DNA of 64,000 nucleotides from Selaginella moellendorffii (lineage: Eukaryota > Plantae > Lycopodiophyta). Shown piece by piece: positions 20,331 through 64,000 of this stretch. The notes below the pieces were generated by a model. The model did no database searches and was not told the origin of the DNA. It was given only the letters and a program-made list of their open reading frames with translations. Numbering within the stretch: position 1 is the first letter of the stretch; every line of letters starts with the position of its first letter. The translations under genes and the position numbers were made by a program. The stretch is taken from NCBI RefSeq assembly GCF_000143415.4, contig NW_003314360.1, forward strand, positions 228,284 through 292,283, read 5' to 3'.

Positions 20331-20436
20331 TATCCATCACTGCGTGGGCAGCGAATTCAACTGAGAATCAACATAGCGAACAAAGCAAACTTTTAAAATC
20401 TATCAATCAAAATTTAGGGTTCTTCCTTACTATGAG

Positions 20437-29559: not shown

Positions 29560-30499
29560 CTGATGAACTCGTATGAATAAATTGAGTAGACATGATCCCA
29601 ATATCCTCTCCTCCATTGCAAGCATATATGACTTTCCATCCTCCACCTACCTTGAGTCGTAAGATCGTCACTTAAACTTAACTATTTCAAGAATGTGGGT
29701 GCACGCTCGCTTCACCATAGCACCCAGTAGATTGAAATTTTTTCTTTCTTTTATTTATTGTGTTTCAGAATATTCCCAGAATATTATTAATGTATGGCTA
29801 CAAGGGGAAAAATTTAATAATTTCTTCTTCCTATGGATCCCCGTGAATGATCTCCTTGTCGTGAGTGTAATGTAGAGCTGAATCTGGCCGTCTGGGAGGA
29901 TCCAAGTTGTACATGCATACTCCACGTTCATGAGTGAGCCTGGCAATTGCTGAAGAAGGGCGTGTTGTTACGAGTTCAGCTGCGGCTGTCGACCTTGTTG
30001 AGTCGGAGAGGGCCAGTCTTGGGATTAGCAAGGATGAACTGGTTTGGTTCCTTAAAGTCTTTCCACTTAGGTCTCTCCTTGAGCAGCTTACCACACTGAT
30101 AGCGAGGTGTATACTGTAGTCTAAGCATTCTCACACAGGAATGCCTAGAAACTCTTAGCTTGCTTACACCGCAAGCCGCTAGCATTTTATGAGAAAGTTG
30201 GTATAAGATTGTTTCGGGTGCTAGTGTTCTTGCATAAGTCGCTGGAATTAAGCTTTGCTTCCATCACCAAATACAAGAGACACTGGCCGATTTCTTGTGG
30301 CTCAGGTGCTACCCAATGTCACTAATGTAGAGATCCCAAAGCATACTATGATGAGACCACTTAATCCATCAAGATTCATGCTCCTTATATCAACTAGTTT
30401 GATATGGACTAAAATATGGATGCAATGCCTCAAAGTAGCAGTGACTTTTTTAAATAAGAAACAATATCAACAGAATACAAATGAGGAAAAAAACTGAAT

Positions 30500-39500: not shown

Positions 39501-40574
39501 AAGCCAAACTTCATAATGCCAAAGCTAATGAAAAACATATCTGCATCAATCCAAAAGCCAAGTATAATAGAGTTATGTGTAAGCGACTAAATTTTTCCAT
39601 TTTACTTTAGTCACTTAACCACATCTTCGACCACTTGGAAGAGTTTCACTCACAACCTCCATAAGTCTTATTTCGAACTTAGGCTTGCTAGCCCCGAGAA
39701 TGGCATCCCCACCACTCAACCTTTGTAACTTGGTCCAAGTGCTCCACATGTTTGATCCTATAACTGACACCCCAAGGTACCATCAACATATCAGCCTGTT
39801 ACGCTAATGCCATGCCCCTTCACCTTGGTCACCCCGGTGGTCTAACACCACCTGCATCACAGTCCTTCTCTCAAAGACTAGGCCATCCATCCACAAGTGA
39901 TCATCCTAGATCCACTCCTTAGCATCCTTAAGATGCCCACAGACATGGGGATTAGCCTTCCCCAATATCCCTTTTCCAGTTCCTACCAAGTCCCTTTTTG
40001 TCCATGGCCGTGTTCGCTAACACTGCCACTGGATCAAGGCTCACAAGCCCAACCACTAAGTCCCTCGGTCCTCTGGACTTCCTCCTCATATGACCGTATC
40101 CTTGGTCTCTACACTAGAGGATGCCTCCTCTTCCTTTTCACAGTCTGGGATTTTGGGGCAACATTTTGGAACACCGTGGCCTTATGTGAGCCTCGTGGGT
40201 ACTCTCCCCGCCTTTCGCTTTTGGGTGCTCTAGCCATGGGCTTAGAGCAAGGTTCCATTGAGCCACACTAGGTATCCAAGTAGGTAGTGACACCCACACT
40301 TGGACTGAGAGCATCGGCCAGGTGATCTCCCGAGGGAACTAGAGCCAGCTCTTGAACACTTCACTAAGCTACCCCACTTGTCGGTCCGTGTTCACTCTAA
40401 TCTTGGACTTCCCAGTGGGCAGTTCATCACCCAACATTGGGTATAGCCTTTTTGGGCCAAACTGGCCTTTTCTGGCCAAACTAGCTCCATTGAAGTCCTC
40501 CCCCTTACTATACTTTTGGAGCTCACCAAACCCCCCAGGGTCTGGGAAACGAACACTTTGGGCTTTCACCCTCT

Positions 40575-40825
40575 CAGACTCGAACTCGGACTTGGACTCG
40601 GACTCGGACTTGGTCTTGGCCTCGGCCTCGGCCTCGGTCCTGGTCTCGGTCCTGGTCTCGGTCCTGGTCTCGGTCTCGACCTCGGACTCCATCTCAGGTC
40701 CTTCTCTGACTCCATCTCGGATTCCATCTCGGGTCCATCTCAGACTCCATCTTGGACTCTGTCTCGGTCCATCTCGGACTCCATCTTGGACTCCATCTTG
40801 GGTCCATCTCGGACTCCATCTCAGA
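40575..40825. repeat. LTR minisatellite (CTCGGN hexamers, GGACTCCATCTC units); also at 46340-46640 and 1540-1625
   Basis: Imperfect 6/9/12-bp tandem units with variable copy number. Confidence 0.9.
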
Positions 40826-43467
40826 TTCTTCCACGTGTCATGTGTTGGTCCTTTTGGGTCCCTTTTTAGAGCCTCGCTTATTGCTCGCTTCGTGCTCATT
40901 CCTCGAGCACTTTGTTAGGAGTTCCACTCCCGCTCTCAACCTTTCAAATCGGAGTTTTTAGTCCAAATGAGTTACGCTCGTTTGGCTTTCGCTTTGGCCA
41001 CTACCACGTGGCACCCTTTCGGCTTGACTTTGGGGCCTAGGGATTTTGTGTCTCACAACTCCACCACCCATAGACGAAGTTCGATGTCCTCATCGAACGG
41101 TAAACCCCTTTTATAAAGTAACACCCACATGTATTACCATTTCCATCCTTGGCACTCAGCCAAAGTTTGTCTATGGTTTGACACTGAAAGCTCATTATGC
41201 TTTGTCCATCCTCTAAGGAGCATAGTCTCTCCAACTTAGAGACTTATTCGACCACTTGTGGTGGTTTTTTCCGTTTATTTGGTTTAGTCATCGCTAAACT
41301 CGTCAGAGGCACCTCCTCTATCTCAATCCCACTACTCCTTCTCGAGTAGTCTCAATTTCCCTCGATTGAACATTTGCACTTTGGAACTTTTATTTTTTGA
41401 CTTCTTGAAATCAATTTCCTAGGTGTCTTCAACATTTTGCATTGCACATATTGTGCAACTCCACTTCCTCATCTTAGGAAGTTATTTACTTGAGGGCACT
41501 GTCATCCTCTCTTCTATTTTGTGCCACCTTGGGCACTAAGTTAAAGAGACCTACTAAGGGTGAACACCCTCTGGACTTGGCAAAGCAAAGTCTTTGCTAT
41601 GGAACCGAACGGATACCTCAAGAATGGAGGTAGTGATCCAATGTTGCTGGGTGCAGCAATCAAGGATAGAAGCAAAAGACTAGTGGCTAAGAAAAGAGCC
41701 ATGGGAATCAAGGGAAAGAATCTAAAAGGCAAAGTTAAGCTAGGAACACTAATGTGTTGGGTGCTGACGAATTATAGGAAAAACAATGTGTTTCCAAGGA
41801 TGGATTCCCAACTGCTCCGATTTGGCAAAAGTGGAAGCTCCAAGGATTTTCTATTGTGGGCTCTATCCCTGGCCCCACTTTGTGACCCTCCTATGGGTCT
41901 CTTGTAGAGACTATTGTATTCAGACTCACTATGCCATTGCATAGTCACAAATTATTTCCCTTAAGTGTTCTTCCCACTTGGTCACCTTGACCAAGCCACA
42001 CTATCATCAATAGTTCAAACCTACACTTTGAACTAGGGACTTTATCCCTTAACTTCACAAGAACCTTGTCCTTGTTTTTAGTCATAAGATCACCTAGTGA
42101 CCACACTTTGGCACCTTAACAGGTTTGCCAATAGGTATTAAGTCTTCCAGATCTTTAAGTTGTTGACCATGACCCCGGGGGCATCCCCCACACTTGGCGG
42201 TGCACCCAAGCCAGCCCTTCCGGCTAAAGGTCTATACCAACTGAGACTGGGTGTCCCCATCTCATTCACCACGTCCTTGGTGCCATTCGCACCAAAGTGT
42301 TCAAGTTAGATATGCTGAGCCACACTAAGCAATCTAACCGTGCATCATGACTTCGAGGCATCCCTCGCTTGGCGGTGTGCCCAAACCAGTCTCCTCTCTG
42401 AGAGTCCATGACCACCAAAAAATGAATGTCCTCATATTCCAAACCATCACCACGCCCTAGTGATTTGGGACTCGAACCCAAGCACTAAAGGGTCAGGACT
42501 CGAACCCAGCCTCCGTATATGCATCTACGGATGGCATCACACAGGATGCCTGGCGTGACTCCCTACGCCAGTGCATCAATATATATTTAAAGCACGCTAT
42601 AGATCACAACTTAGGAACCTAGTTCCTCTGCACTGCCAAGTTCTCTCACTTGACAAGTCTGTGATCATGCATGGACTCCTCCATGCTCGGCCGCATGGGC
42701 CACCCCCTTTTGAAGTTAGCACCTTCAATTAGGGGATTTGTTCCCCTGACTCGCCAATCTTGCTTAGCAAGTCATCCGGCCATCATAACATGGTTCATGC
42801 ATAAGTGTGAAAGTCCTTAACCATCAACTTTCGTTCAAAGCCCTCTCTTTGAACACTCGGGAACTACTTCCCCAACCTTGATAGCCTCACCTCATAGCCA
42901 GTTTTAAGACTACGCTTCTGCTATGCCACTCTGATTTTGCGCGCTCTAGGAACTATTTACACTTGGCTTTCTAAGTATTTATTTACCTAGAATTGTCTTT
43001 GGGAACTTTCAAGGAACTTTGTTCCTTAGCTTGCTAAGGCTTCTCTTTCACAAACTCCCTATTCACTATAGTCTAACATGGATAATTCCACATTTTTTAC
43101 TCTTCATGGCATCACGGTTGCTAGTAGCAACATCCTTGAGCACCCTCTTGATTCTCCACTCCCAACTTACATAACCACCATTGGTTATGCCCTTCGATTT
43201 CTATGGTTTAATTCCATCCCAATACTACTTGCCTTTTGGCCCCATATATTTCCTTTGGTTATTCTCCTCTAAACTAGAAGGATACCTTTGCACATTTTAC
43301 CATGCCTTAGCAAGTATTCATAGGGATGAACCTACTCGATAACTTAGGGAGTGGTTCTTCAATCTAGGCATGCTCACTTTATAATCCCACACACCGGGAT
43401 TACCGTTGCTACTTATGGGCCTCCATATACCCATCACTAACCTTGCCAAAATCCCATTTTTAGCTTT

Positions 43468-43854
43468 TGTCAGGAATCCCCCAATTCTTGCCACATTCCT
43501 GACTCTCGCCGGATTCCTGACTTGCAGACCACATTCCTGATTCTCAAGATACTTCCCTATTCCTGACTCTTGAGATACTTCCCTATTCCTGACTCTCTGA
43601 TTTCCTATACGATTCCTGAGTCTCGAACCACATTCATGATATTGATGTGGCGCCTCCTCGACCTCAGCTATATTTAGGCCATCCTCGATCCAAGAGTGGT
43701 GGAGCTTCATCAACCTATAGTATATATAGGTTAGCTTTGTTCCATTTCTCCACAATCTGAATCAACGCCAGTCTAAGACCTCTTCTTTGTTTCCACTAGT
43801 TTTTCTCTTTGTCTTTTGCATTTTCCAGTCTTGATCTTGTTGAAGGTCTTGACA
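43468..43854 (+). mobile_element. Solo LTR of the 12490-15747 family
   Basis: TGTCAGGAATCC...TCTTGACA flanked by a perfect TSD GCTTT. Confidence 0.95.
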
Positions 43855-46231
43855 GCTTTGTCTAAATTGGGTAGACGGATTCCTCCCATCTCCACAACCT
43901 TGGACGTTTGGATAGCATCTCCTATCCATCATTCACTAGGGATTTAGTCCCTTGGGCCTTATCTATTGCCCTCGCGACACTAAACACCACCTTTTGGTGT
44001 TCCAAAGTGTTTCGGTGTCCCAATGATGGTCTCCTGGACAATGAGTATTTCCTTTTTCGACATTGACTCACTATATCGCAACATAAACAATTTATCCCCC
44101 GTAAGGGTATATCTAACTTCCTTATGCCATTAAGAAGTCTTGGGTAGCTACTTTCTACTTGTTTAACTAATTATTTCGCACCTTTTGCTTAGTTGCCTCA
44201 TAGTTGTCAAGTCTTACAACTCATTGCTGCTGCTTCCACACCTCCATCATTATCTAGATCACCACACTCTAACCGTATACCTTATAGCTTAGGCTATGCC
44301 ATTCCCATTTCCATTGGGATTCCTTTGGATGGGGTTCTCATGAACTCGCCAACTTGACCTCAAGGCAGCACGCCTTGGCACTTTCGGTGTCTCCACACCA
44401 TCAGCTCCATAAGCCTACCTTTATGACACTTTTTACTTGTGTCTAGGTCTTTTTGCCAAGACCAATATAGTTATCTCTTATGCCAATCATCCATTAGCAC
44501 TGCACCATAGAGTTTATGCACAACTTTGCGTCAAAGTTGTTTTCTTCCGGGAAACTTTTTCCCACGACTTTAGCATGGCACCTTCTGTCATCAATGAGAG
44601 ACATACTGTTCTCATGCTTGGATCTCAAGATCCTCCCCATCCTTCATGGGGCACCACACACCTCAGTCCAAATGCTTCCATCAATCCCTTAGGATTATTC
44701 CTTGACTCTATTGGAGTTATTCAACTTTTTGGACTTTGCTAATCCGACGACTCATAAGGTTTTACTTTTGAGGTGCTAGCTCACTGGAATACAACTCCTT
44801 GTATTTATGTCCTACTCACAAGGACCATATTTGCAAGTGTTACTCCGACACTTGATTTGTTCTCTAGGGGCAACCTTTTACCCCTTATGACCACTAGTCC
44901 ATGTGATGAAAATACCAACTCATCCTCTAAGTACACCCCCAACTCCTTGGGTTGTTCCAGCATTTATTAGAGGTAGCCCTGGCTACCATTTCAAGGACTT
45001 GTGTCCTCATCCACATTTGACCTCCCACGGTCATTAATTCTGGTCTCAAATTCACGAGCATCAACCTCAACTTCATGAGGGTAATTTTATGACTCCTTTA
45101 TTGTTTTGGAGTCTCTATCTTCCCCGTGACCCAACTATAGTTGTTTACCACAATTATATTAGCCAGTTTGCTGAGTCAAACACTCATCTGGATCACATCC
45201 TCAACTCCATGAGGAAAACCTTGCACTGTTCCCAAGATCCCAAAGTCATTCCATTATTGGCCCTTCTCTATCCACCACCTCATTTACAAGTTCACACATG
45301 AACTGTAATGGAGAGCCATGTCTTCCCGACCTGCTACTCCTCAAGGATAGGCCCATTCCTCGGACCTTCTGATGTGGTGATATACTTGAGCACCAATAAA
45401 AGTCGGACTAAGGAACAGCTCCGATACCAAGTTGTAAGCGACTAAATTTTTCCATTTTACTTTAGTCACTTAACCACACCTTCGACCACTTGGAGGAGTC
45501 TCATTCACAACCTCCAGAAGTCCTATTTCGGACTTGGGCTTGCTAGCCTCGAGAATGGCATCCCTGCCACTCAACCTTTGCATTTGGTCCAAGTGCTCCA
45601 CGTGTCTGATCCTATAACTGACACCCCAAGGTACCATCAACATATCAGCCTGTTACGCTAATGCCATGCCCCTTCACCTTGGTCACCCCGGTGGTCTAAC
45701 ACCACCTGCATCACAGTCCTTCTCTCAAAGACTAGGCCATCCATCCACAAGTGATCATCCTAGATCCACTCCTTAGCATCCTTAAGATGCCCACAGACAT
45801 GGGGATTAGCCTTCCCCAATATCCCTTTTCCAGTTCCTACCAAGTCCCTTTTTGTCCATGGCCGTGTTCACCAACACTGCCACTGGATCAAGGCTCACAA
45901 GCCCAACCACTAAGTCCCTCGGTCCTCTGGGACTTCCTCCTCATATGACTGTATCCTTGGTCTCTACACTAGAGGATGGCTCCTCTTCCTTTTCACAGTC
46001 TGGGATTTTGGGGCAACATTTCGGAACACCGTGGCCTTACACGAGCCTCGTGGGTATTCTCCCCGCCTTTCGCCTTTGGGTGCTCTAGCCATGGGTTTAG
46101 AGCAAGGTTCCATTGAGCCACACCAGGTATCCCAGTAGGTAGTTGCCACCACACTTGGACAGAGAGCATCGGCCAGTCGATCTCGCGGGGGAACTAGAGC
46201 CGGCTCTTGAACACTTCACTAAGCTACCCCG

Positions 46232-46331
46232 NNNNNNNNNNNNNNNNNNNNNNNNNNNNNNNNNNNNNNNNNNNNNNNNNNNNNNNNNNNNNNNNNNNNN
46301 NNNNNNNNNNNNNNNNNNNNNNNNNNNNNNN
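46232..46331. other. Assembly gap (100 N)
   Basis: Run of N. Confidence 1.
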
Positions 46332-49300
46332 ACTCGAGCTTGGGCTTGGTCTCGGGCCTCGGCCTTGGCATCAGTCTCGGTCTCGATCTCGGTCTCGGTC
46401 TCGGTCTCAGTCTTGGTCTTGGTCCCGGTTTCGACCTCGGACTCCATCTCGAATGCCATCTCAGGTCCATCTCGGACTCCATCTCGGACTCCATCTCAGA
46501 CTCCGTCTCGGTCCATCTCGGACTCCATCTCAGTCTCCATCTCGAACTCCGTCTTGGACTTTGTCTCGGTCCATCTCGGACTCCATCTCGGACTCCATCT
46601 TGGGTCCATCTCGGACTCCATCTCAGGTCCATCTCGGACTCCTCCACGTGTTATATGTTGGTCCTTTTAGGTCCCTTTTTAGAGCTTTGCTTATTGCTCG
46701 CTTCGTGCTCATTCCTCGAGCACTTTGTTGGGAGTTCCACTCCCGCTCTCAACCTTTCAAGTTAGAGTTTTTAGTCCAAACGCGTTACGCTCATTTGGCT
46801 TTCGCTTCGGCCACTACCATGTGGCACCCTTTCAGCTTGACTTTGGGGCCTAGGGATTTTGTATCTCACACTATGGTCAACAAGTGATCACTAAACGATC
46901 CTTTATGAATCCATCTATAGCAAGACGTAACTCACTTCATAACAAGCACAAGAAGAATCATCAATGATCGATATATTCCAACTCAAACCCAATAAAGATT
47001 TAAACATTCCAATATCAATTACTAACCTTTTCTCCCGTAGAGTTATAGTTGCCCACAACTAAATCACTTTTTAAAGAAAAGTTCAAATCTCAACCCCTAC
47101 TAAACAATCTCGTCTAGAACACAACTAACTCAATTTTCCATTCAATTCATTTGAACGTCAACATAGTTGTTAACTAGCAAATGCATGAATGTTAATAACA
47201 CAAAGCTATAGCTAAATCATCAACACTATTTTCATTGAGACTAATGAAACCTAATATCAATTATATAGAAAGACATCTCATCTCATTTGAATCTCAACAA
47301 CAACAATGTCAACAACAAAGCATCACTTCAATGCCATCAACACTATAATAAAGCTAATAGAAAGCAAGAATGAATCACCACTCAAAGCTCTTTAGCAACC
47401 AAGTTAACCAGAGTCGAAGAGACTATACTTAGTATTTGAGACTAATTCTTCAACAATACTTAGCTACAGATAACACTTCATCAAGGAGTGAATCACCACA
47501 TCCAAGACTTAATAAAATCTAACACTACAGACTAAACACGACTAAATGATATCGACAAAGGTAGAGTCGACATGCCAACATGGAAAACCATGTAAGTCTA
47601 ACGACACGATCCTTTGCAACACCATCCGGTAAAGCAAGTCTATCATTGCTAAATCTTCATCGAGTGAAGCAAGTGTTAATAGTTCTCAACAAAGTCTACA
47701 AGTAATCACTAGTTGCAAAGCAACTAACAATCACCCTTCAACTTGCCTTCACAAGACCCAAATACTAAACTCATGTCATCAAGTTATATACTTATCCAAG
47801 ATGAATGTAAAACCCCAAGTACAGGATAAAGGTTCATAGACAAGCACGAATTAAATGACCACTTGAATCCAACTCAACCATAATAAGCTCACTAATGCAT
47901 TTAGCCAACAGCTCTGAGCATGCTTTGAAGAGGCTAGTTATACACGATCAACACTTAGTCGAAACTAAAGTGAAGACCATGAGATGGACTCATATCGGTA
48001 CACAACCTCTTCATAGACAAAGCTATAGTACGGGTACCAACACCTCAACTTCAAACAACTAAATTGAACATCACCATCTTTAGCCAAGGCGCAAGGCCAT
48101 CAAGACTAAGTCAAAATCAGTGAGAGCTCACTACTCTCATAGAGTCTTAATGAAATGCAAGATGCAACCTACCACCAAGCATAGCACTAAGAGAAAAGCA
48201 CAAGAGTCACCTTTCTAAAAAAGCGCAATAGCCACTTTTGTATACTAACTCTAGACTCTATCCAATTCAATTGCCTTAGCTCTAAAAGTCAGCATCCCTT
48301 TTGGGTTGCATCTTACAAACTACCTACTAAAGTGTAAACTAACCAAAGTCAACTCCAACCCCTTCACTAGTTTGTATTGGCTTACAAAAACAGAATGGTT
48401 TTCGAGCAAAGTGATTAACAGATCAGCCATTGAAAAAGCCTAAGAAAATTTGTGAAAAATTTTCCATCCTAGAGAAAGAATGATTCTCAGTTTAGGAATG
48501 TAAACTTTCAAGACTCAACTAACTTCCTTCTACCTACTACTTCACATAGGCTCACCTCAACACAAATTCTCATGATCCATCAATATGCTTAAGCATCAAA
48601 CATTATGCCTATATTTTTTATTTTCGACACCAACATCTGCAAAAATGCAAAAATGAATATCTAAAGTTTGATCACGAAGACCACATCTTTGGATACCCAC
48701 ATTGCACCAACACTTTTCTTCAATCACCTTCAAGATCCAATATAAAGCTAAACACTAACAAAAAAAATGACTTGAAAAATCAAGATTTAAAGAAAAATTC
48801 CTCATCACTCAACATGACAATGTCATCTCCACTAACACAAGTGCTAGTGATGTCAATGCCTTAACTACACATCTTCTCCATCTAACAATTTACTCTAAGT
48901 GCTAATGGATCAACCAACGAGCTATAACAAATGAATGCTACCACCCTTTTCCAACACTATAATAGACAAACTCTTCAAGGAATAAGGAACCAACTTAAGC
49001 TTAGCATAATGGATCACCATTGAGAATTTAGTCAAAACTACTACAATGTTACTTCATGCAAGTAGAATAGCTTCACCATCAACCTCTTTAGGGTTGACCA
49101 TCATTTAACTAAGCAACTTCACAAACACATTACTCATTATCATATGGATATGATATAAGTATCACAATGACTTGATCATTAATTGAGCAACACTATGAGC
49201 AATGCACATGTCACTACTATAAGGGTTTATGTGAATATCAAGTGTCAACTCGACTCGACAAAATACAACATAAATGCTACACTCCACCGATAGAAACTTA

Positions 49301-51196
49301 CAACACTAACACCACTAACTTTTGTTCACAACATGGATAAGTTCATGCCATTTTTTTTTTTACCAAACTCAACACTAATCCAACACCAAGTTATTCAAAG
49401 AGCAATAGCAAAGTTCCAGAAAAAGAATTGAGCATTGTAACCCAAATCTTTTAATAGCAAGCCTAGACAAAATGGTTTAGCACTTTACTGCTATCTATCC
49501 CACAACTCACCATTTGTAGGACCATCATTTCCAATATGCACCAAGATAGGGACTTTTTATTGTATACCATGAACACAAGCAATGAGTCAACACCTCGTTG
49601 CAAATCATATCTCCAAGAAAAGAAAATGATTTACATATTTGATCCTTCGTCCTTGATGACTCTATTTTCGGTCTCATCTTTGATCAAACCTCAAGCTTGC
49701 TTCTGCATTGCCTTCAGTCCAATCTAAGAAAAGTTTATGAAAGAGCACAACAATGACTATTTGAACCAATAGACTAATCCCTACAATCTTAATTGATCCA
49801 TTCATAATCATGCCTAGGAAGGATTCACTAGTGCCGTGCTAAAAAGCTACGGACTAGCTTATTTGCCACTCATAGCAAACCCAGGGAAGGTTTACTTTCA
49901 CTTATGGTACATGGAACAACTCATGGAACTACTGATAAGCTACCATTAATCCCGCCAACTCCAAATGTAACTTCAAGTTGCTAATGTGCCTCACTCACGA
50001 GCCCAAGCGTAAACTTGTGCAAAATGATACACCTCAATATAATTGCAAAGCTTTTGCACCCAAACATGTACCCACTTAGATCATCGTTTTCATCTTTGTG
50101 TATACAACGAGACTAGTTGCCCAATCTCATTAGATAGTACTTGTCAAGACTCATCCTCTGATACCAAATGTAATGCATGTGGTTTTTACTTTTTATCCTA
50201 TGGTGATTTACCATCACGAAGCAGAACCTAAACCCTCCATGTGCCACGTGTTATATGCCACATGTCACATGCCATGTGTCCATAGGACAGTGGTGTGGAA
50301 CCCAAGATTCAGGGCCTTGGGCCACTAAACGAAGGAACGGTGCCAAACTCTCAAGCATGGAGCCAAGGAGTGATGGAACCGGACCATAGAGCAATTCCCA
50401 AGCACACAGCCCAAGGAGCAAAAGGATAGGAGCCTAGAGCAACTTAGAACAGTCCTAGAACAACCAGCATCCCATTGCTAGGAGCAATACGCAAAATGGA
50501 GCCAAATGGAGTTTAGCGCTATTTTGGCATACCGGTGGCCTAACGCAAAGACATGGGTACTCTACTAGCTAGCATGGAATGGAACTTGGGCTTAAACCCA
50601 AATTGGACGCAGAACAAAAATAAGCACGCAAGCAAAAGCTAGACTATACCTCAAGTTAGCTGATTATACCCAACTTACCCACTATCCCTACTATACATTT
50701 GGAAACTCCCACAGCCCCCCCTTGAGAAACACGCGCTTTGGGCTTTCACCCCAAGCCTCCCTTAGTACCAGGAATTAGTCCCTAAGACAAGCTCGAAATT
50801 TACTAAATATGGAATGTCCCTAAATTATGAATTTGGACACGGGACGAACACCATTATGTTCAGGACAGTCTCTACATTCTGTAGGTATGCCAAATGAGCA
50901 AATCTAGACACTTTCCATAAATAGCATTTGGGATTGAAATGAGACTAACACAAAGGGCATGATAGCGAGGGTGTTTGGCAAACACAGTAAGCTATTATCC
51001 AGCAATATTGAGGGACTAATCTCAATATGTGAAGGTTCTTGCTAAACTAATGCAAGACAAAGCAAAAGAGAACTAAGAGCCAGGCCAAGTATGCTCAACT
51101 AGAAACACATAGGAGTTCCTACCTTATGTCCATTTGGTTAAGTACAAGTGCTAAGCCTAGTAAATTAACATTTGAACAAGAGGGGCTGATAAAGGG

Positions 51197-51797
51197 TGTA
51201 AACTATTGAGTTTAGACTTCTTAGGAAGTCACCCAACCCAGTACTATTCAAACCTAAAGACACTTAACCCCAAATATCCTAAGACCTTTAACCGATTAGA
51301 AAAAAGGGTGCACTCTTATTCATGGGCCCTTTCCCTCTATATTTGAACCCCATGGATCGTCTCTCAAGTCGTTCTCTTTGGTTGCTTACAATCCACCACG
51401 CTTCCCTACAAGTTCACACCCTCGTGAACGGAAGCTGAGAGCCGCAACTCTCCCAAGAGCCACACTCTCTACCCCTCGGGTCAAGCCTAGTGGGAGCAAA
51501 CTGGACCAACCAAATGTCAATCAACATGTGGTGTGATTCCCCTAGCCAACCAACAAAGTCGGACGCGAGACCCCTCTGATACCAAATGTAAGCTCCAACC
51601 AACAAAGTCGGACTTGAGACCCCTCTGATACCAAATGTAAGCTCCTGAGTTTGAACTTCCCAGGAGGTCACCCAACCCAAATATCCTAAGACCCTTAACC
51701 GATTAGAAAAAGGGGTGCACTTTTATTCATGGGCCCTTTCCCTTTATATTTGAACCCCATGGATCGTCTCTCAAGTTATTCTCTTTGGTTGCTTACA
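51197..51797 (-). mobile_element. Cassandra-like TRIM with 5S rRNA-derived LTR segment
   Basis: LTRs 51197-51390 and 51636-51797; TSD AAGGG; tRNA-iMet PBS; non-coding ~245-bp interior; the minus strand carries TGGGTGACCTCCTGGGAAGT, matching plant 5S rRNA as I recall it. Confidence 0.88.
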
Positions 51798-52315
51798 AAG
51801 GGAACCAGCAATATCGACCTCTTGCCATCGTGGCAGTAAGGAAAGAGTGTCCGTAAGGATTGGTCGACAGGTAACTTTCAATACCCGAAGTCACATTCGC
51901 GACACTGGATCTATAACAGTAACAATGTTGGTAATTCTCATCATCATCTTCTTCTTTGCGTACTTGCCCTTGTAGCTAACAAGGACGTACTCTAGGACGT
52001 TTGTGTCGCAGACAACAATAACACTCTCACCATCAATGGCAAGGTGTGCAAGACTAGCAAAGGTTGTGGAGGACTTCAAATCAGATGCTTAAGAACTTGG
52101 CAACACTAGCAATGGGCTCGGCTTCATAGTCACTATTGCAAATGTTCCCAATTTATCTGGGCTCAACATTTTGGGCATCTCATTTATGCCTTGACTATGC
52201 TCTTGACCCACACATGCATCCCCATCACACTAAGCTTCTCTTCCTCATCTAGAGAACTCTTTATATGGGCTTTGTCACCATTGTGGTGGAATTGGCTCTT
52301 CAAGTAGACCAATTT

Positions 52316-54186: not shown

Positions 54187-55365
54187 AGATGGAATTGAAC
54201 CTGTCTTACACTAGTAAGCAATGTCTAGTACCTGGAATTGCATATATCTCGTGACAATAAACTCAATTTAGTAGTGTCCAAAACAACTTTTGGGAGGCTT
54301 CTTGCTTGAAGTTGCATGTTGCAATAATTAATAACTTTTGCAATCTATAATATAATTTCAATTGCATCATTGGGTAATATTGTGGCAATTGTTCTAATCC
54401 AATCTTGTGTGTTTGTTTTTCCAATAGTCTGGTAGAAACTACAAAAAGAGTTATCATAACACAATGTGCCCACACATTGTGAAGCTATTATATATTTTGG
54501 AGACTTTGTTATTGTTGTTTTCTTGGCCCATTTTTAGCAGTGTCCATCCAAAGCATGCTCTATTCCCTCAAAAAAGGCACATGATAAATAATTAATGGAT
54601 CTCTTGGAGCAACTAAACTAATGGAAGAATTGGGGAGTGCTTAAGGATGATAATAACTTTTGTCTTTTGATCAAAAGGCAAGCTTGACTTGCCAAGATTT
54701 ATCAAATGAGGTAAAAAAAAAGTTTCTAAACATACCATCAAACCCCAAAAATGTTCATGAGTACTTGAAATACTTGGAATGGTAAACAAAATGTTCACAA
54801 GTACCTGAAGTACTTGGAGTGGTAAACATAGATAGAAATGATGCTTGGGATGTGGGATTCATGAATCTAACTTCCAAACAACTTGCTTTCATATAAGCTT
54901 TTATCCTTTTATAACCATTCAGTACCGAATTGTATTTTATATGTTTTTTTTTTTTTTCTAGTCTATTGCATTTTCATCCTCTTTGTTTTACTTCTTTATG
55001 TAGCATTCAGTCCCAATTGACGTATTGCATGGCTTTTTAATGTTTATTTGCTTTCTTATATGTGTTTTTTTTTCCTTGTGAATGCAGTTTTTTTAAAGGG
55101 TAGGGAGAGAAACCATTCGTCACTTCCAGATCAATGTCAACAAGGAGCCCATGGTGGCAGTGTCCGGGTTTAACTCGCAGAACATCGGAGTCCTAGGTTG
55201 CCAAGGCCGTGTTTGGCTCGAATCAGCCCATCTCAGACACTGTCATCGAGAGGACATTCCAATGCTCTCGTGAAAAGGCTCCAGGAGCTCGTGAGCATGA
55301 CGTAGAGAACAATGGATTTTATCTTTTGATTAATAACTTCAAAGGTAGTGTTTGCATCATTCTCA

Positions 55366-57327
55366 CTAGTTTCTCTCTTGCTCCAAGACGCTGGCGAGTA
55401 GGAGGTTTGGGGCCGCCACCCTCGAACCCAGTCCCATCACTTCACTCGCGCCAAAGGCAGCATTCTTGAGATCACGTGCTTCTCGACAAGCGCCCAGAAA
55501 GCTCGTCCAATTGGCATAATCTGCTGTCCAAGGCATGGCGGCGATCAAGTCCCGGGCTTCTTCCAGGTATCCGGACCTGCCCAGAAGATCAATGAGACAG
55601 CCATAGTGCTTCCTTGTCGCTGCCAGGCCATGATCAAAGGCCATGGATGTGAAGTAGCTCCGGCCATCATAAACTTTTCCCTGGTGGCTACACGCAAGCA
55701 GCATCGCCACGAAGCACGTCTCATTCGGGGGCTCCATTGTCTTCATCCTGTGAAACATCTCGATCGCAAAGGGGGAATTCCCACACTGGACGGATCCCAC
55801 TAGCAAGCACGTCCATGCGATGGAATCCCTCACGGGCATTCGATCAAAGAGATCCACAGCGCTGTAAATCTGCCCATTTTGCGCGAATGCAATCAACATT
55901 GCCGTCCAGGACACCAGTGACCTGTGAGGAATCGCATCAAACACTCCCTTGCATTGCTCAAGATGCCCATTTTGGGCATATGCCGCGAGCATCGACGTCC
56001 ACGTAAACGCATTTGATTGAGGCATTTGGTCGAGCATCTTCTCTGATTCTTCTAGATGCCCGTTCTGGGCATATGCCGATAGCATTGCGTTCCAGGCCAC
56101 GAGATTCCACTGGGGCATGGAATCAAAGACGTAGCGTGCTTCTTCAAGATTCCCATTTGCGGCATATACCGTTACCATTGACGTCCACGTAATAAGATTC
56201 CTCTCCTCCATTCTCTCGAAGAGTTTTTGTGCTTGTACGACTTGCCCGGTCTGGGCATACCCCGCCAGCATGGCATTACACATGGCAAGATCTGGCTCGT
56301 CAATCAAATCAAACATCTCCACCGCCTTGCCGACGTGGCCATTCTGGGCATACGCAGCCAGCAACGACGTCCAAGAGAAGAGGTCAACGCGTGGCAAAGA
56401 GTCAAACAGCTTGACCGCATCTGTGAGATTCCCTTGCTGTCCGAGCGTCGCCACAAGGGAGCTCACACACCCAATGCCGTACACTGGCATCTTGTGGAGT
56501 ATGGCCAATGCTCTATCCGTATGACCATGCTGGGCATATGCCACGAGCATCGTGCCCATGGACACCACGTTTTGCTGGGGCATCTCGTCGTAAAGTCTCT
56601 TGGTTGTCTCTAGATCGTCGTGCTGGGCAGATGCCGAGAGGACAACGTTCCACGACACGAGATTTCTCTCTGGCATCGCGTGGAAGATCTCGCGAACTCG
56701 ATCGAGCTCAAGACTGTGCACATACGCTGTGACCAAAGTGTTCCAAGAGACAATCGTTCGTTCCGGCATTTGATCGAAGAACTCTTTGGCTTTTGGATGA
56801 TCGCCGAGCTGGGCAAATGCGGCAAGCATAGAGTTCCAGCAACCGACATCTCTCTCTGGCATCTCGTTAAACAATCTGGAAGATTCGCTAAGATCGGAGT
56901 TGTGGGAATATGCAGCTAGCATGGCACTCCACGCGAGAAGGTCGTGGAATGGCATCTCGTCAAAGGTTTGCTTTGCGTGATCGACATGCCCTCTTTGGGC
57001 ATATCCTGCAAGCAGCGAAGTCCACGATATCAAGTCCCTGCCGGGCATCTCATCAAAGAGTTTCTTGACTTCGTCCACGTCGCCGCACTGGCTGTATACC
57101 GCCAGCAGTGTGTTCCACGAAACGAGGCTCCGCTGCGGCATGCCGTCGAAGAGCTGTTTAGCGTCGCCCAAGAGCCCATTACGGGCATATGCCGAGAGCA
57201 TCGCATTCCAAGAGATAAGATCGCGCTGTGGAATCCTGGCAAAGAGCAGGCGAGCTTCGTCGATTTGGCCATTGCGAGCGAGCGCACAGAGCTTGGAAGT
57301 CCAGGCAACTGTATCGGCATGCGTCAT
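55366..57327 (-). CDS. PLS-class PPR protein (mostly 31-aa short repeats) with E domain and no DYW
   Basis: About 16 repeats of ..FD.MP.R.LVSW..ML.AYAQ.G; FVAMLLACSHQG, HYGCLIDLLGRSG and WTSFLGACR; intronless, 653 aa. Confidence 0.93.
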   Translation of the reverse strand: MTHADTVAWTSKLCALARNGQIDEARLLFARIPQRDLISWNAMLSAYARNGLLGDAKQLFDGMPQRSLVSWNTLLAVYSQCGDVDEVKKLFDEMPGRDLISWTSLLAGYAQRGHVDHAKQTFDEMPFHDLLAWSAMLAAYSHNSDLSESSRLFNEMPERDVGCWNSMLAAFAQLGDHPKAKEFFDQMPERTIVSWNTLVTAYVHSLELDRVREIFHAMPERNLVSWNVVLSASAQHDDLETTKRLYDEMPQQNVVSMGTMLVAYAQHGHTDRALAILHKMPVYGIGCVSSLVATLGQQGNLTDAVKLFDSLPRVDLFSWTSLLAAYAQNGHVGKAVEMFDLIDEPDLAMCNAMLAGYAQTGQVVQAQKLFERMEERNLITWTSMVTVYAANGNLEEARYVFDSMPQWNLVAWNAMLSAYAQNGHLEESEKMLDQMPQSNAFTWTSMLAAYAQNGHLEQCKGVFDAIPHRSLVSWTAMLIAFAQNGQIYSAVDLFDRMPVRDSIAWTCLLVGSVQCGNSPFAIEMFHRMKTMEPPNETCFVAMLLACSHQGKVYDGRSYFTSMAFDHGLAATRKHYGCLIDLLGRSGYLEEARDLIAAMPWTADYANWTSFLGACREARDLKNAAFGASEVMGLGSRVAAPNLLLASVLEQERN

Positions 57328-57453
57328 GAACCAAAAGAAGGATCACATCCAGCGCTGCCCAATACGAGCACTGGAACTTGTGTGCGAGCTCTGGAAATGC
57401 CAAGGTGATAGAAGTCATCAACCATAGATTGCGAGGAATTAAAAGGAGATTTC

Positions 57454-58245
57454 TTACAAAGGTTCCTTTTCCCTTTCCTTGTTCCACCTCTCGATTTTGG
57501 CCAGCCTTTCACGATCGCTCTCTCGTCGCCAGGGCGGGCTTCTCCTCGCATGGCGCTCCCCATCACGTCTGTAATCCCGCTCCCCATCCTCCTCCCTCGG
57601 GCGACGTTTGTGATCCCGCTCCCCATCCTCCTCCCTTGGCCGACGTCTGTGATCCCGCCTTGGTGGCGATGACGATCGATCGCCCATCAGCTCCCTCATC
57701 AGAGCTCTGCTAGGATGATAAAGGTGCAAGAAGTTGCAGCATCCGCCTCGGCTGCACCCTCCTTGCTCTTCCTGCCGGCAAGACGCCTCGCGAAAATCCG
57801 TCACGGGGGAGAACTCGGCCGCGATCGGGCGCCCGGAGTAGAACCTCCCATTCAGCGCTGCCATAGCTGCGACTGCATGCTCCTCGTGCCGAAACTGGAC
57901 GTAAACATTCCCGGCCAGATGGTTGCCGAAGTTATTGCAGATCTTGAGCGCCTCCACCTTGCCGTGCTTGCTCACCTCCTTAAACACGTCCTCGTAGAAC
58001 GCATCCAAGTCCTTCTGGAGCTCTTCCTTGGAGATGGCAGTGTTTCTGTATGCCTGACCGGGGGTGATCTCCGGGCTTTGATACATGTTGTTGAGCAGCA
58101 AAGTGCAGCTCTGCTTAGGTTTTACGTGCGCTCTCGAGCATCGGTCCCCGTGTCGACAGGCGCCCATCTTGAGGTAGAAAGGGCAGTTCACTCGGTCTTG
58201 TTCCGTGCCAAAGATGTCAGCGAGGTGCTGCGCGCCACCTCCCAT
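57454..58245 (-). CDS. U2AF35: Splicing factor U2AF small subunit (U2AF35)
   Basis: [58 protein letters not shown], second CCCH finger and R/D/E tail; ATG at 58245 fits the conserved N-terminus. Confidence 0.93.
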
Positions 58246-58420
58246 AACGTTCCTCAAGAACCCTAGCCGAGACCTCTCGTATATATACACGGGTTGTCAA
58301 AAGGGTTGTCACAAAGGTGGCCAAATGCCGTTACTGGGCATTCTTATGCTTGCTTGCCCTAATTCTCGACCCAAATCTCCCGCCAGGTTTTAGGGTTCTT
58401 ATGCTAGGTTTTGGGGGTCA
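58246..58420. promoter_or_regulatory. Compact divergent promoter region with telo-box-like motifs
   Basis: 175 bp between head-to-head ATGs; AACCCTAG at ~58259, TATATA at ~58280 and TTTAGGGTT at ~58389. Confidence 0.5.
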
Positions 58421-58738
58421 ATGGGGCACGAGATCCATCCCGCGAGCTCGCCGGCTCACAGGAGATTGCAGAGTCCATCGTCGCCCTTCTCGGCGCCGCG
58501 GAGGGCCGGATTCTCGACGCGCGAGGAGCCGGATCTAAGCTGGAGGGCGCTCGTCTATCGGCACCAGTTTCTACTGCTAATGCTGGGAGTACTCTTGTTT
58601 CTGTGCACTGTCTACTTGTATTTCGCTATAACGCTGGGGACGGGTAATTCGTGCGCGGGGCTCACAGGAGTCCAGAAGGAGATTTGCAGCCTCTCCTCCA
58701 AGGACAAGACGAGGCGCGTGGGCGCGAGAGCACTCCTG
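58421..58738 (+). CDS. Small conserved plant single-pass membrane protein (first/main coding exon)
   Basis: RHQFLLLMLGVLLFLCTVYLYFAITLG..SCAGLTG.QK..C resembles a conserved ~90-110 aa plant family; GTGAG donor at 58739. Confidence 0.7.
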
Positions 58739-60838
58739 GTGAGTGATCGCAGCATTGCTTATTGTCTTGCTGGGATTTTTACTCGAGAATGTGTGTTCCT
58801 TCTAGACAGATTTAAATGCTGGGGAGCTCTGGAGAAAAGAATTAAATCTTGGTCTGTGCAGTGACGTTGGAGGAGCTGATGGTTTCTCGTGCAAGGTAAG
58901 CAAAGAGATGGATGGCATGGAAGCGTGCATTTTAGATCTGACTGGTTGCTTATATTTCTTTAGAAACTTAAAACAGGAACACAAGCTTCCTTGGAAGCAA
59001 ATAGTGGCCTGTTCGATCTGGTTTTCCTTGAGCTTCATAGCTCTCGAAACGGTACGTACGCGTCTTTAACTTGAAAACCTTTGATTTTACTTCTTTTTTC
59101 CACAGATCACAAGTGTGCTGTGGGGATCTCAAAACTGGTCAGAAAAGGTGGAGTTTTAGTGGCATCTATCGACATCTCGGAGTCCATGCAAAAACTTAAC
59201 TAGTCTTTTGTCGGAAGGTTGTCTTCGTGTGTCTCATTTTATGTGCTCTTCTGATAGTTTTTGCTTTTCCTTTTGCAGAAACCGTGACCAGGGCCAGGTC
59301 TGGCGGGCTCCTCAATAACACGCGGATTTGTCTTTTGGTAGGTAACTATGCTGTATTTTTTTATCGCAGGCTTAATCACCTAATATCGAAATGAAAAGTA
59401 TCGTGGATCAAACTTTCCAAGTCTACCAAGAGTACTGATCAGGTTTTATTATGTCTGCAAAGAGGCAGGAAACTGTGATGATCGAGACGATTGCTTCCCT
59501 TCAAAGACCTGTAAGACTTGAGTTTCTTTTGGAAGTTCTTAACTCTTTCTTTTGCCTGTGTTTCCTCTCAGGAACGCGCTTGCACTGTCAAAGTGAACTT
59601 GCTGCAAACATCATTTCGAAGATGCTGACTTTGATTGATCCCGTTATGGCGATTCCAGAACAGCAAACCAAAGGTAATCATCTGGGGTTCTTTCGATTAA
59701 TTTGAGCAGGGCGTCAGACCGTTTTGCAGGATAGTGAGCTTTTAAAATGGATGTCGCCATTTGCTTGTAGGTGGGCGATGTCCGGATCGAAGGACGTATC
59801 CATTCGACACATTCAAAGTTTCAATAGGGAGGTATCAACCAGCGCTGCTTGATAGTCTACTGATATCTATACTGATAATCTACTTGATTCCAGAGATGAG
59901 ATTTTCAACCCTGGGGTGTGGCGTGCTCAGAAGATTCTCCACATTTCGTTTGGGTTGTGGGAAGAACGCGCCTTTGAGCTTAATTTTTGCGTACTAAGCT
60001 TGCAGGGACCAAACCATCATCATCCTTTCTAGAGATTGACGACGACCAGCAAAAATTAAACCAAGCTAGCAAGCAAATCTATGGACGGATGCGATGGGCC
60101 GGAAAGCAACACTGCCATCGCAATCCCACCGTACGATTTGGACGACGCGGGCCTCGTGACTGCCGACAGTGGGGTGCTGGTGGTCGATTCCCGTCCCGAG
60201 AAAGGCATCGTTTTGGCATATACCTCGTGGGGACCAAAGCGTATCAGATATTTTGCGTGCTTTTCCAAGCCATGGACTTGGCTGCGCGTACGAACGGACA
60301 GCCCAGTACGGTCGGGCCGGCATTATTTTACTGTGGTAAATGTCAAAATCGAGGAGTGAAGGAGCTGTCAGGAAATTGTTTTTCACCGCCTCTCTTCTGT
60401 GGGTTTAAACGGGAGACTAGGTCTTTCTCGGGGTTTAGCTAGGCATTTTCTCTCGTTTGATCGGACCGATCGATCGAGCGATCTCTTTCGGTTAGGCCGG
60501 ATGCCGCCAGGAATCGGAGCGTATCATCGGGTACTAGTGATGCGTTTGACAGCAGCAGCGGTAGTGCGGCGGCATCCATCGCGAGATTTCGGCTACATTC
60601 GAGCGTTTCTTCACAAGATTTCCTGAGGCAAGTGTGTGAGAGCGAGTTCTTTCCCGTGGAGGGAGAATCCATCCCTGCATTCACAGAAATCGAGGCAGAG
60701 GGCGAGTATCTCGCAAGAATGCTAGCGAGCGAGAAAATGCTGCTACTGGGAAGAATGATCAGATAGGGCGGACAGGCATGATCATCGTCTTTCTCGTAGA
60801 AGGAAGAGAGGCAGTGTAGTCTAAGCTCCGAGGAAGGC

Positions 60839-63329
60839 ATGGGTTGCGCAGCATCGAAAGTGAGCAAGGCGGAGGATGTGAGTAGATGTCGCGCGAGACG
60901 AAGGCTCATGAAGCAGACAGTGGCGTCAAGGCATCACTTTGCGGCAACTCACGCGGCTTACATCCAAGCCATGAAGAACGTAGGGGCGGCTTTCCGGCAA
61001 TTTGGAGAGACCGAGCTTCGTGATGCTCAAGCAGCAGCCGCCGAGCGTACAAAATCGAGCTCCCTTCAGTCACCCGATCGCCCACTTCCTCCACCTCCGC
61101 CGCCAGTGTTCCTCCAAGACTCTCCTCGCATGGAGTTCCTTTCTCCTCCCGCATCTCCCATCAAGACGGAAGATCACGAGAGCGAGGAAGCCAAGGATCA
61201 GGAGCGCCGCCAACGCAAGAGAGAACAGGAGCAGCAGCAAAGTCGGTTCCAAAAGTTGGAGCAAGAGCACGAGGGCTTCTACTATCACCGTGGCGATGAC
61301 AAAGATGACAAGGGAGCGTACTACTTTACTGCTCCACCGCCTCCTCCAGTTCCCTCGAGCACAGCTCCGCCTCCACCGTCGCCTCCAAGAGACTCGGCCT
61401 GGGAGTTTCTGGATCCGTTCAGGCCGCAAGAGCACCCGGTTCTTCTTCACGACCAACGCACCTCGAAAAAGGTGGAGGTTTCTAAGCAGGACCGCGAGAG
61501 AATGGAAGATCACCACCACCACCACCACCACGATGATGATGATGACGATGAGGACGACGATGACGAGCACGAAGTGTCCAGCAACCCGGACAAGCCGGTG
61601 GTTGTCAAGAATCCCAGCGTCATTGGTTCCAGCAAGCGGGACTTGGCGATTATTCTACTCCCGAGTGGCGGGATTGGACGCAAGGACCTTCTCGACGTTG
61701 TCAAGGAGGTTGATGAGTTGTTCCTTCGTGCTTACGAGTGTGGGAAGGACGTTTCCAAGCTTCTGGAGGCGAGAAAGGTTCACTACCACTCTAATTTCGT
61801 CGACTCAAGAGGTAACGCTTTCTATCATTTGCTTTATAACTAAGTTCCAAAACATCTTGCAGGACATGAATCGCACTCGAAGAGAGTGTTGCAAGCAATT
61901 TCTCTAGGCCACAGAGGTTCGAGCAAAACCCCTTTGAAGGTAGTTGCTTCCGAGGATCACCTAAGCAGCCCCGAGGACTCTGGTAAAGCTGGAAGTCATG
62001 CCGGTACTCTGGACAGCTTGTTGGCCTGGGAGAAGAAACTGTACGAAGAAGTTAAGGTAATTTCTCGTGCTTCCTGTTGCCAGTCTTATGTTTAAATGTG
62101 TTATGGCAGAATACAGAAGTGATACGAGCTGAGTACCGGAAAAAATGTTCCCCCAAGCTCCAGGAAGAAATGAGCGACGCAACCAGGTCCATGATCAAGA
62201 CCTTGTCCACGAAAATTCAGGTGTCGCTGCAGGGTGTGGACACGGCAATCTCGGCCATTAACAAGCTCAAGGAAGACGAGCTTCATACACAACTTGTTCA
62301 ACTTATTGAAGGGTATGTACGAGGTTTTGGGTTTCTGTCAATCACTGATTTTCTTAGAACAGGCTAATGAACATGTGGAACGAGCTTTACGATTGTCACC
62401 AAAGACAACACAAGATCGCATCGGACATGAAATCCTTAGACCACTGGGGGACTGTGGAGCCGACAACTAACATCCACAGACTAGCAACTTCTCAGCTCGA
62501 ACTAGCGCTCGGTGCGTGGCTCGCAGGATTCAACAAGCTCATCTCCGCGCAGCGAGATTACCTCCACAACCTGACGGGCTGGCTTCGACTTAGCAACATG
62601 CAGCTCGAGTTGGAATCCGCCAGGGAAACTCCAGGCAGCAAGAAGAAGCAAGCCACGGCAAGGCCGGCGTGGCTGGCGTCCATGCTCCAGCTCTGCCTGG
62701 ACTGGAGCTTGGCGCTGGACAGACTGCCAGACAAGGTAGCCTCGGAGTCGATCAAGAGCTTCGAGGCCGTGGTTCACAAGCTGGTGGATCTCCAGAACGA
62801 GGAAGTGAAGCACAGGAAGAAGCTGGATGCTGTCTCCAAGGAATTCGACAAGAAGATGGCACGCTTGTCAGCGAGTACGAAGCATCGCAAAGCGAGCCGG
62901 GAAGAGCAGCAGCAGCAAGCCACTGACACTCGAAAGGAGAAAGATCCAGACAAAGAGAAGGCGGCGGCGGAGAACGATCCGCCTGGATCAGCTGAAGCGA
63001 CGAACGAAGATAGCAATCTGGTGGAGTCCATCCCGAGCATCCTGCGAGCAGCAGCAAATCGAGGCAGTGGCAAATCGAGGCGGCGGGGCTCTCCCGAGGA
63101 GAGGATGCGTCAGGCTGTGAATTCGATCCAGGCAAAGCTCGAGGAAGAGAAGGAGCGAGTGGCAAAGGTGGTGTTTGACACGAGGGCGACGACCATCAAC
63201 AGCTTACACACGGGATTGCCGAGCATCTTTCAGGCGGTGGCAGGATTCGGTCGCATCTCCCTCCATGCGTATCAGAGCCTCTACTGCCAGGCACACAATG
63301 GCGCTCTCCTCCGGATCACTCAAGCCTAG
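60839..63329 (+). CDS. DUF630/DUF632 (NRG2/APSR1-like) protein; exons 60839-61811, 61863-62056, 62110-62312, 62363-63329
   Basis: MGCAASK..CRARRRLMK..HAAYIQAMKNVG (DUF630), SAWEFLDPF, SHAGTLDSLLAWEKKLYEEVK and GLMNMW..CHQRQ (DUF632); the frame is kept across GT-AG introns. Confidence 0.93.
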
Positions 63330-64000
63330 GGACGATGACAAGTGTGCCCTAGCGCTAAATAGGGCAAAGGTAGTACTGCCACGTGTATGTAGTACTCATT
63401 GCCACGTGTATGTAGTTATTATTCTAGTTAATATTCTAGTTAATGAATCGCTTTTCCCGCGGTGATTTTCAAATTTTCTTGAGCCCCACTTGTGCGCGGG
63501 GCCTTGAGATCCGGGCAGGGCGGAAGAACCCTAATCGTGCGACACGAATCGAGCGAGGGAGAAAGAGGAGGGGAGAAATTCCTTTCCCATATCTTGCCTC
63601 GCGGAGGAGAGATTTGATTAGATTGAGGAGCCGCCCGTTGCGTGTTGGGTGCGCGCGGATTGATGTGCCCGCATTTAATTAATCCGGTCGCGCAAGGAAG
63701 GGAGAATTTCCCGTTTGTGGGCTTTTGCATCGCGGTGCGCTGCCCGATCTTCGTTTTTTGGCGCTGCCTGGCCGCGCCGCTGACAGCCACTGCCCAGGCA
63801 TTCCTTTCTTTCTTCGCTGGTCTCTCTCTCGTGTTCTGGGGATTTCTATTTCTTGTCTCCATCCAAAGCAGGCACAAGCTCTCGCTTTCGAGGTCACGAT
63901 CGTTGTTTTGGAGTGGAGATCACATTGATAGATAGATAGCTCCCCCCCTTTTTTTTAATCGCGCTCTTGTTCGTGTTCTTCCGGTGATCGATCGATGGAA

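Follow-up and report, generated by a model that had tools for sequence, protein, structure and literature searches.

The window, a stretch of 64,000 nucleotides of Selaginella moellendorffii DNA, contains at 51197-51797 on the minus strand what is most likely an old, inactivated copy of an abundant TRIM family that carries the 5S rRNA internal control region (box A, IE and box C) in its LTR. This is the Cassandra design (also known as 'TRIMp3'), in which a sense-oriented 5S control region occupies the 3' end of the LTR and is closely followed by a tRNA-iMet primer-binding site (PBS). A Cassandra-like TRIM bearing 5S Pol III promoter sequence had been proposed for this position by a sequence-only reading of the window, and the box geometry, the Rfam score and the TRIM anatomy all uphold that proposal.

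The element is complete and 601 bp long, with terminal repeats, PBS, polypurine tract (PPT) and target-site duplication (TSD), and without an open reading frame; at less than 1 kb with two LTRs it has the anatomy of a TRIM. The 3' LTR (51390 to 51197 on the minus strand; 194 bp, TGTAAG...TTTACA; 223 bits with nhmmer) holds the fuller 5S-derived segment. The 5' LTR (51797 to 51636, minus strand; 162 bp) has lost box A and IE to a 32-nt deletion and retains box C. LTR termini read TGTAAG...(C/T)TTACA, forming a 6-bp inverted repeat, TGTAAG/CTTACA. Two nucleotides (TT) past the 5' LTR lies the PBS TGGTATCAGAGG (51622-51633, minus), which matches the iMet PBS TGGTATCAGAGC at 11 of 12 positions; no tRNA gene was present in the window or in four further loci against which the twelfth base could be checked. 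The non-coding internal domain (51391-51635, minus; 245 bp) includes a 49-bp tandem duplication, whose two units (51546-51594 and 51595-51643, minus) are 96% identical and each comprise the last 8 nt of the LTR, TT and the PBS, so that a duplicate PBS occurs at 51573-51584 on the same strand. A polypurine-type tract, AGGGAAGCGTGGTGGAT (51391-51407, minus), abuts the 3' LTR, and the same tract is found in the best-preserved family copy, L017. Perfect AAGGG duplications adjoin the 3' LTR at 51192-51196 and the 5' LTR at 51798-51802. The sequence-only reading had thus correctly described a 601-bp non-coding element with TG..CA LTRs, a tRNA-iMet PBS and a perfect AAGGG duplication, and the LTR strings it quoted read as written in the window. 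It had overlooked the 32-nt loss in the 5' LTR, the 49-bp tandem duplication and the absence of the 5' half of 5S.

The flanks of the TRIM are the 5' LTR (50174-51904, minus) of a second LTR element, as had also been suggested, and the 3' LTR of that host element provides an uninterrupted paralogue. This flank copy (36952-37969) contains a single AAGGG (37861-37865) and no TRIM. Logan contigs assembled from public runs under two organism labels likewise join 51190 to 51797, skipping 606 bp that correspond to the 601-bp element plus one TSD. Since both an empty paralogue and TRIM-less contigs exist, the insertion is real. Together with insertions that have different duplications (AAGGG here; ATGAA in L017), these empty sites identify the family as mobile.

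The interrupted host element (36865-51904, minus; ~14.4 kb, TSD TCCAG) is itself non-coding. With 1.1-kb LTRs, a G-rich PPT and no reading frame of 230 aa or more, it is LARD-like. Its PBS, TT-TGGTATCAGAGG at 50155-50168, has the same 12-mer as the TRIM although the two elements are unrelated, and the junction of LTR end and PBS (TACATTTGGTATCAGAGG) is identical to that of the TRIM at 18 of 18 nt. Because the junctions are identical, the two elements may use the same helper. The LTR pair of the host element (K2P 0.105; 99 transitions, 3 transversions) is slightly more diverged than that of the TRIM (K2P 0.094), which fits the order of nesting. An apparently intact Ty3/gypsy element lies elsewhere in the window (6100-11544, plus), with gag (551 aa) and pol (1,253 aa) in one frame separated by one stop codon. 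The nearest proteins, from metagenome and liverwort entries, are 50-56% identical, and no Selaginella protein was among the matches to its Pol. We rejected this element as the helper of the TRIM, as no TGGTATCAGAG occurs nearby and its ends have no similarity to the TRIM.

The suspected lycophyte host was confirmed by a neighbouring gene. A U2AF35-like intronless reading frame (57457-58245, minus) matches SELMODRAFT_123490 of S. moellendorffii at 99% identity along its entire length, the next best matches being 40-64% identical; matches to a PPR reading frame were ~35% identical across land plants and gave no information on the host. The SELMODRAFT_123490 locus (L001; GL377636.1, GCA_000143415.2) is 97.7% identical to window positions 55122-64000, and therefore represents the other haplotype. 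At L001:13094-14760 this haplotype lacks ~23.5 kb (window ~31300-54870) and ~11.3 kb (~19300-30600). The former block comprises the whole host LTR element with the TRIM and the latter a Helitron region; these are either large haplotype-specific transposable element blocks or deletions in the other haplotype.

The 5S-derived segment was identified by its promoter boxes and by alignment to the 5S rRNA model. The Cassandra signature of Kalendar et al. 2020 (PMC7215508) consists of RGTTAAGYRHGY, 18 nt, RRRATRGGTRACY and then TGGTATCAGAGC. In the 3' LTR, box A, GGTTAAGTGTCT (51258-51269, minus), and box C, GGGTTGGGTGACT (51227-51239, minus), each deviate from this signature by one mismatch, box C begins exactly 18 nt past box A, and the same is true of L017. 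The PBS of the TRIM lies 32 nt past box C, within the 5-200 nt that characterize Cassandra. When two mismatches were allowed, box A-N18-box C occurred at one site in the 64 kb and in none of 100 shuffles. A T-run at 51300-51305 (minus) lies 31 nt upstream of the GTTAAG of box A and is a candidate Pol III terminator, one that would set the limits of the R region; across all Selaginella LTRs the distance from T-run to GTTAAG was measured as 36-38 nt. It is T6 in the window copy and T4 in both L017 and the family majority, which has G for A at 51304/51305.

Alignment of the LTR to Rfam RF00001, the check proposed with the original reading, gave 22.2 bits over 51200-51296 (minus), with E-values of 0.21 (3 kb, all families) and 0.015 (LTR alone). 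The true match covers the 3' two-thirds of this interval only. At the gathering cut-off of 38 bits the window yielded no match, and the best family copy reached 32.9 bits; that every score of the family falls below the cut-off counts against the 5S assignment. Alignments of the window copy and L017 leave out 29-40 positions of the model and form none of helices I-III. A near-complete ~120-nt 5S domain that folds like 5S RNA was not found; what is present covers positions ~50-104, comprising the internal control region and a portion of the tail. Ahead of box A comes instead a second, box A-like unit, itself preceded by the T-run. In L017 the two units, GGTTAAGGGTCTTGGG and GGTTAAGCGTCCTTGGG, are 16/18 identical with one additional indel and spaced by 25 nt. 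The duplicate stands in place of the missing 5' half of 5S, and the LTR cannot yield a 5S-like RNA, which also counts against the Cassandra-type reading. Compared with cellular 5S (RF00001), LTR positions equivalent to ~50-104 are recognisably 5S (internal control region and helices IV-V) whereas positions 1-49 are not; helix I cannot form, and the segment is embedded in an LTR.

The 5' LTR, despite its deletion, contains a perfect 20/20 match to plant 5S (51655-51674, minus; plant 5S positions 85-104). The sequence-only reading had matched this 20-mer to the plant C-box region, and it indeed coincides with the published primers 623 and 2721 of Kalendar 2020 (PMC7215508). Its perfection may owe something to C>T decay, since the better-preserved L017 reads CCCGAG where the window copy has CCTGGG. 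At two other sites, 51227 and 51255, the family-majority letters restore 5S matches lost from the window copy (GACCTCC and CTTGGG).

Contigs resembling the 5S genes of the host itself aligned to 51228-51268 only, at an identity of at least 85%, and ran on from 51268 and 51228 into a 5S-like 5' half and a tail ending in a T-run. We read these contigs as the cellular 5S genes of the host. If this reading is right, the core of the LTR segment is at least 85% identical to host 5S and the likeness ends at the edges of the control region. The putative host sequence is known from 30-nt loose ends only, and six S. moellendorffii loci (135 kb, L012-L017) contained no 5S gene at the Rfam gathering threshold.

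To calibrate these scores we obtained reference Cassandra elements by scanning metagenome contigs for GTTAAG..GGTRAC..TGGTATCAGAG. Two of the seven matches were genuine, and the other five (L005, L006, L007, L009 and L010) were chance matches and not Cassandra. One genuine match (L011:5933-6443) is a complete fern Cassandra with 188-bp LTRs, a PBS that abuts the LTR and the duplication ATTTT, matching the Nephrolepis exaltata LTR primer 1118 at 26 of 26 positions. It was found in a JGI metagenome contig beside (TA)n(TG)n microsatellites, and plant DNA in metagenome collections is thus usable as a source of reference transposable elements. The other genuine match (L008) is a grass-type Cassandra copy. 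Fern Cassandra LTRs scored 28.8 and 20.8 bits on RF00001, and no match was reported for the grass copy at E<=10. Because of these values, the 22.2 bits of the window LTR, although below the gathering cut-off, are what a true Cassandra LTR gives, and the scores of the family lie within or above the range of the reference copies. In addition, a hidden Markov model of the Selaginella LTR detected the fern Cassandra LTRs (E ~5e-05), across the 5S core only, and an alignment of L017 with the fern copy from box A to the LTR end gave z=13.7 in a shuffle test.

The TRIM belongs to a highly repeated family in S. moellendorffii. In each of two host DNA runs ~28,000 contig pieces fell on the 1.8-kb stretch made up of the TRIM and flanking host LTR, and 712 pieces did so under the second organism label. 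At 51390 and 51636 the loose ends are heterogeneous and mark many TRIM copies in different contexts. Ten S. moellendorffii loci were sampled via host genes, and three contained family copies: a decayed copy with box C deleted (L001:1-338), a fragment (L014:22154-22249) and the well-preserved copy on the minus strand of L017 (1906-2458, TSD ATGAA). The remaining loci, six with PPR genes and L013, had none. L013 did contain a partial 18S rRNA (L013:3131-4586; Rfam 399 and 124 bits) within the limits of a called Macro-domain gene; it is probably a piece of rDNA inside an intron.

The L017 copy has box A GGTTAAGCGTCC (GGTTAAGCGTCT in its 3' LTR), the 18-nt spacer and box C GGGCTGGGTGACC. Its LTRs scored 32.9 and 26.2 bits on RF00001, with an E-value of 6.7e-05 (641 nt, all families), and helices IV-V are intact. 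Comparisons within the family rest on such natural copies and on site-by-site majority letters. While the internal domain varies in length (51 bp in L017, ~90 bp in L001 and 245 bp in the window), the LTR, PBS and PPT are conserved, as expected of an element that needs cis signals only. L017 also has part of an additional LTR (positions 1-115, cut off just past the box A-like unit) fused head-to-tail to its 3' LTR, giving the layout LTR-PBS-PPT-partial LTR-LTR inside a single ATGAA duplication.

The window copy itself is no longer able to transpose by the route proposed below, since box A and IE are missing from its 5' LTR and C>T and G>A decay pervades both LTRs. The 32-nt deletion leaves the box A-like unit just 10 nt from box C. 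Over 162 aligned positions the LTRs are 91.4% identical (8.6% diverged), differing by 13 transitions, 1 transversion and the one 32-nt indel. Where the window copy departs from the family majority, as judged from site-wise contig letters, its letter is mostly A in place of G or T in place of C. The transition bias is extreme in both LTR pairs (13:1 in the TRIM, 99:3 in the host element 36865-51904), and together with the A/T for majority G/C it indicates the heavy cytosine-methylation decay of silenced transposable elements.

We then compared the Selaginella family with known 5S-bearing elements. Like published Cassandra (PMC7215508), it is shorter than 1 kb, lacks an open reading frame, has sense box A, 18 nt and box C in each LTR (box A being deleted from the 5' LTR of the window copy), a T-run upstream of box A, an iMet PBS and a 5-bp TSD, and includes copies with rearranged LTR and internal parts (L017). 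It differs in its lycophyte host, published hosts being ferns and seed plants; it is off the published degenerate query by one mismatch per box and one in the PBS; and it has the duplicated box A-like unit in place of the 5' half of 5S. The fern Cassandra (Nephrolepis exaltata type, AY860313; L011) is of similar size (LTR 188 versus 194 bp, element 511 versus 439-601 bp), and likewise ends its LTR with the 5S core, followed within a few nucleotides by the PBS, and has a 5-bp TSD. The distance from GGGTGAC to the LTR end is 36 nt in the fern and 31 nt in Selaginella, and that from T-run to GTTAAG is 43 nt in the fern, 34-41 nt in grass and 36-38 nt in Selaginella. In contrast, the fern element retains part of 5S positions ~40-50 (GGAAACCTTGCA before GTTAAG), which Selaginella does not, and its LTR termini (TGTTGG..CAACA), U3 and internal domain are unlike those of Selaginella. 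Angiosperm Cassandra retains 5S positions ~30-50, also absent from the Selaginella LTR. The nemertean TRIM Ajax (Kojima 2024, PMC10886601), to which we likened the family by description, similarly has the promoter part of 5S only (box A, IE and box C) as well as a PBS, a PPT and a 5-bp TSD, and its use of Pol III was likewise deduced from motif conservation. Ajax has an animal host and is certainly of independent origin. By its control-region-only 5S content the Selaginella element is closer to Ajax than to angiosperm Cassandra.

Two origins of the family are compatible with these likenesses, and both alternatives offered by the sequence-only reading, Cassandra at the base of vascular plants or an independent capture of 5S, still stand. 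The family could well be a true Cassandra lineage, passed down vertically from before lycophytes and euphyllophytes diverged and changed beyond recognition outside the 5S core and the PBS. Its architecture and spacings match the fern element L011. Grass, fern and Selaginella LTRs all have a T-run 34-43 nt ahead of box A, within the part that would be transcribed in 5S, which points the same way. As Cassandra has been reported from both ferns and angiosperms, a single earlier origin would be a small step. Outside the core, where the comparison covered one fern copy (L011), shuffle tests gave no significant likeness in U3 (p=0.076), from T-run to box A (p=0.31) or in the internal domain (p=0.63). 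The U3 value is borderline and reflects a block at matching offsets in both elements (GTTCAAAT..ATAGA..GG.CCC), a hint of common descent. However, where Selaginella has the box A duplicate, 5S positions ~30-50 persist in the Cassandras of ferns and angiosperms, and functional constraint alone could force a shared geometry.

About equally plausible is an independent capture of a lycophyte 5S fragment, or of a 5S-derived SINE, into the LTR of an ordinary TRIM, where it was fixed as a portable promoter. Counting Cassandra and Ajax, the design would then have arisen three times. The restriction of the captured part to the 5S promoter, as in Ajax, the repeated origin of 5S-derived mobile elements and the lack of likeness to fern Cassandra outside the core all favour such a capture. 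Past box C, L017 has the tail CTCCCGAGAAGTCCAA; its CCCG and GTCCAA also occur in the putative host 5S loose end CACCCGGGAAGTCCAAG, and angiosperm 5S primers read CTCCTGGGAAGTCCTCG, unlike the L017 tail. These host-like characters number only two or three and come from a 30-nt loose-end consensus of putative cellular 5S, and the high conservation of 5S makes it a poor discriminator. The close match in geometry to the fern element also speaks against separate origins. We consider the odds of the two origins to be roughly even.

Type-1 Pol III genes have their transcription start ~50 nt ahead of box A. From this promoter geometry and published Cassandra work we infer how an intact copy would be propagated, including its use of Pol III, the transcription start and the length of R. 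TFIIIA, TFIIIC and TFIIIB would assemble on box A, IE and box C of the 5' LTR, and Pol III would begin at that distance from box A, near LTR position 74. It would read through the nearby T4 run, transcribe U5 with its promoter and then the PBS, the short internal domain, the PPT and U3, and stop at the T-run of the 3' LTR. With the T4 run at positions 88-91, the predicted terminal redundancy is ~18 nt, the figure given for Cassandra in Kojima 2024 (PMC10886601). An autonomous LTR element would supply Gag, reverse transcriptase and integrase in trans, reverse transcription would be primed by tRNA-iMet, and integration would generate the 5-bp target duplication. As the promoter would lie within the transcript, every new copy would carry it. 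In L017 a TATA-like AAATATAGA is found in U3, ~20-28 nt ahead of the predicted Pol III start, a place where plant 5S genes, from work in Arabidopsis, also have such a motif. The T4 run 14-18 nt past that start counts against the mechanism, because read-through would be needed. Other sense-strand T4 runs were not significantly avoided (P=0.50 for the window copy, 0.84 for the fern).

Alternatively, the 5S piece could be a passenger in a family transcribed by Pol II from U3 as an ordinary TRIM, which we regard as unlikely. Box C or box A has been lost in L001, L014 and the 5' LTR of the window copy, and the TATA-like AAATATAGA in U3 could serve such a promoter. However, the copies without boxes are the most decayed ones, the best-preserved copy, L017, keeps box A, the 18-nt spacer, box C and T4 in both LTRs, and the TATA-like motif is placed relative to the predicted Pol III start as in plant 5S genes. 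A chance resemblance to 5S, or an immobile locus in which a 5S pseudogene happens to lie between repeats unrelated to it, would account for an Rfam score under the curated threshold but is highly improbable given the absence of the signature from all 100 shuffles, the L017 E-value of 6.7e-05, the match of the Selaginella LTR model to fern Cassandra, the TSDs, the empty sites and several insertions with different TSDs.

The statement that 5S-bearing TRIMs are described mainly from ferns and angiosperms agrees with three surveys. Cassandra was found in ferns and angiosperms by Kalendar 2020 (PMC7215508), and neither the text nor the supplement names a lycophyte. The one large TRIM survey to cover Selaginella, Gao et al. 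2016 (PMC4717578), reported complete Cassandras in 17 flowering-plant species and 5S in no other TRIM family, and their eight S. moellendorffii TRIM subfamilies, SmoRetroS1-8, include none named Cassandra. Kojima 2024 (PMC10886601) traced Cassandra back to an ancestor shared by ferns and angiosperms and, for Selaginella, listed a tRNA-type TRIM only, Helenus-1_SMo, whose promoter is tRNA-derived and not 5S-derived as in the family described here. In the searchable literature we found no report of a 5S-bearing TRIM in lycophytes. SmoRetroS1-8 (PMC4717578) are from the same genome and of the same class, and from a comparison by description only the 5S family may be one of them, catalogued anonymously; SmoRetroS4 is excluded by its size (393 bp, 104-bp LTR).

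The family extends the Cassandra-type 5S TRIM design to lycophytes. For annotation this means that the published degenerate Cassandra query and the Rfam 5S threshold both miss such elements. How, and how often, LTR elements swap Pol II for Pol III becomes testable in a small sequenced genome. A 5S-promoter TRIM in a lycophyte either moves the origin of the design to the base of vascular plants or represents its third independent birth. Lycophytes and euphyllophytes separated more than 400 million years ago, and Cassandra would be older than that split if the family is orthologous to it, a possibility to which we give close to an even chance. In that case it would be among the oldest continuously maintained non-autonomous retroelement lineages, recognisable by its Pol III promoter, T-run and PBS only.
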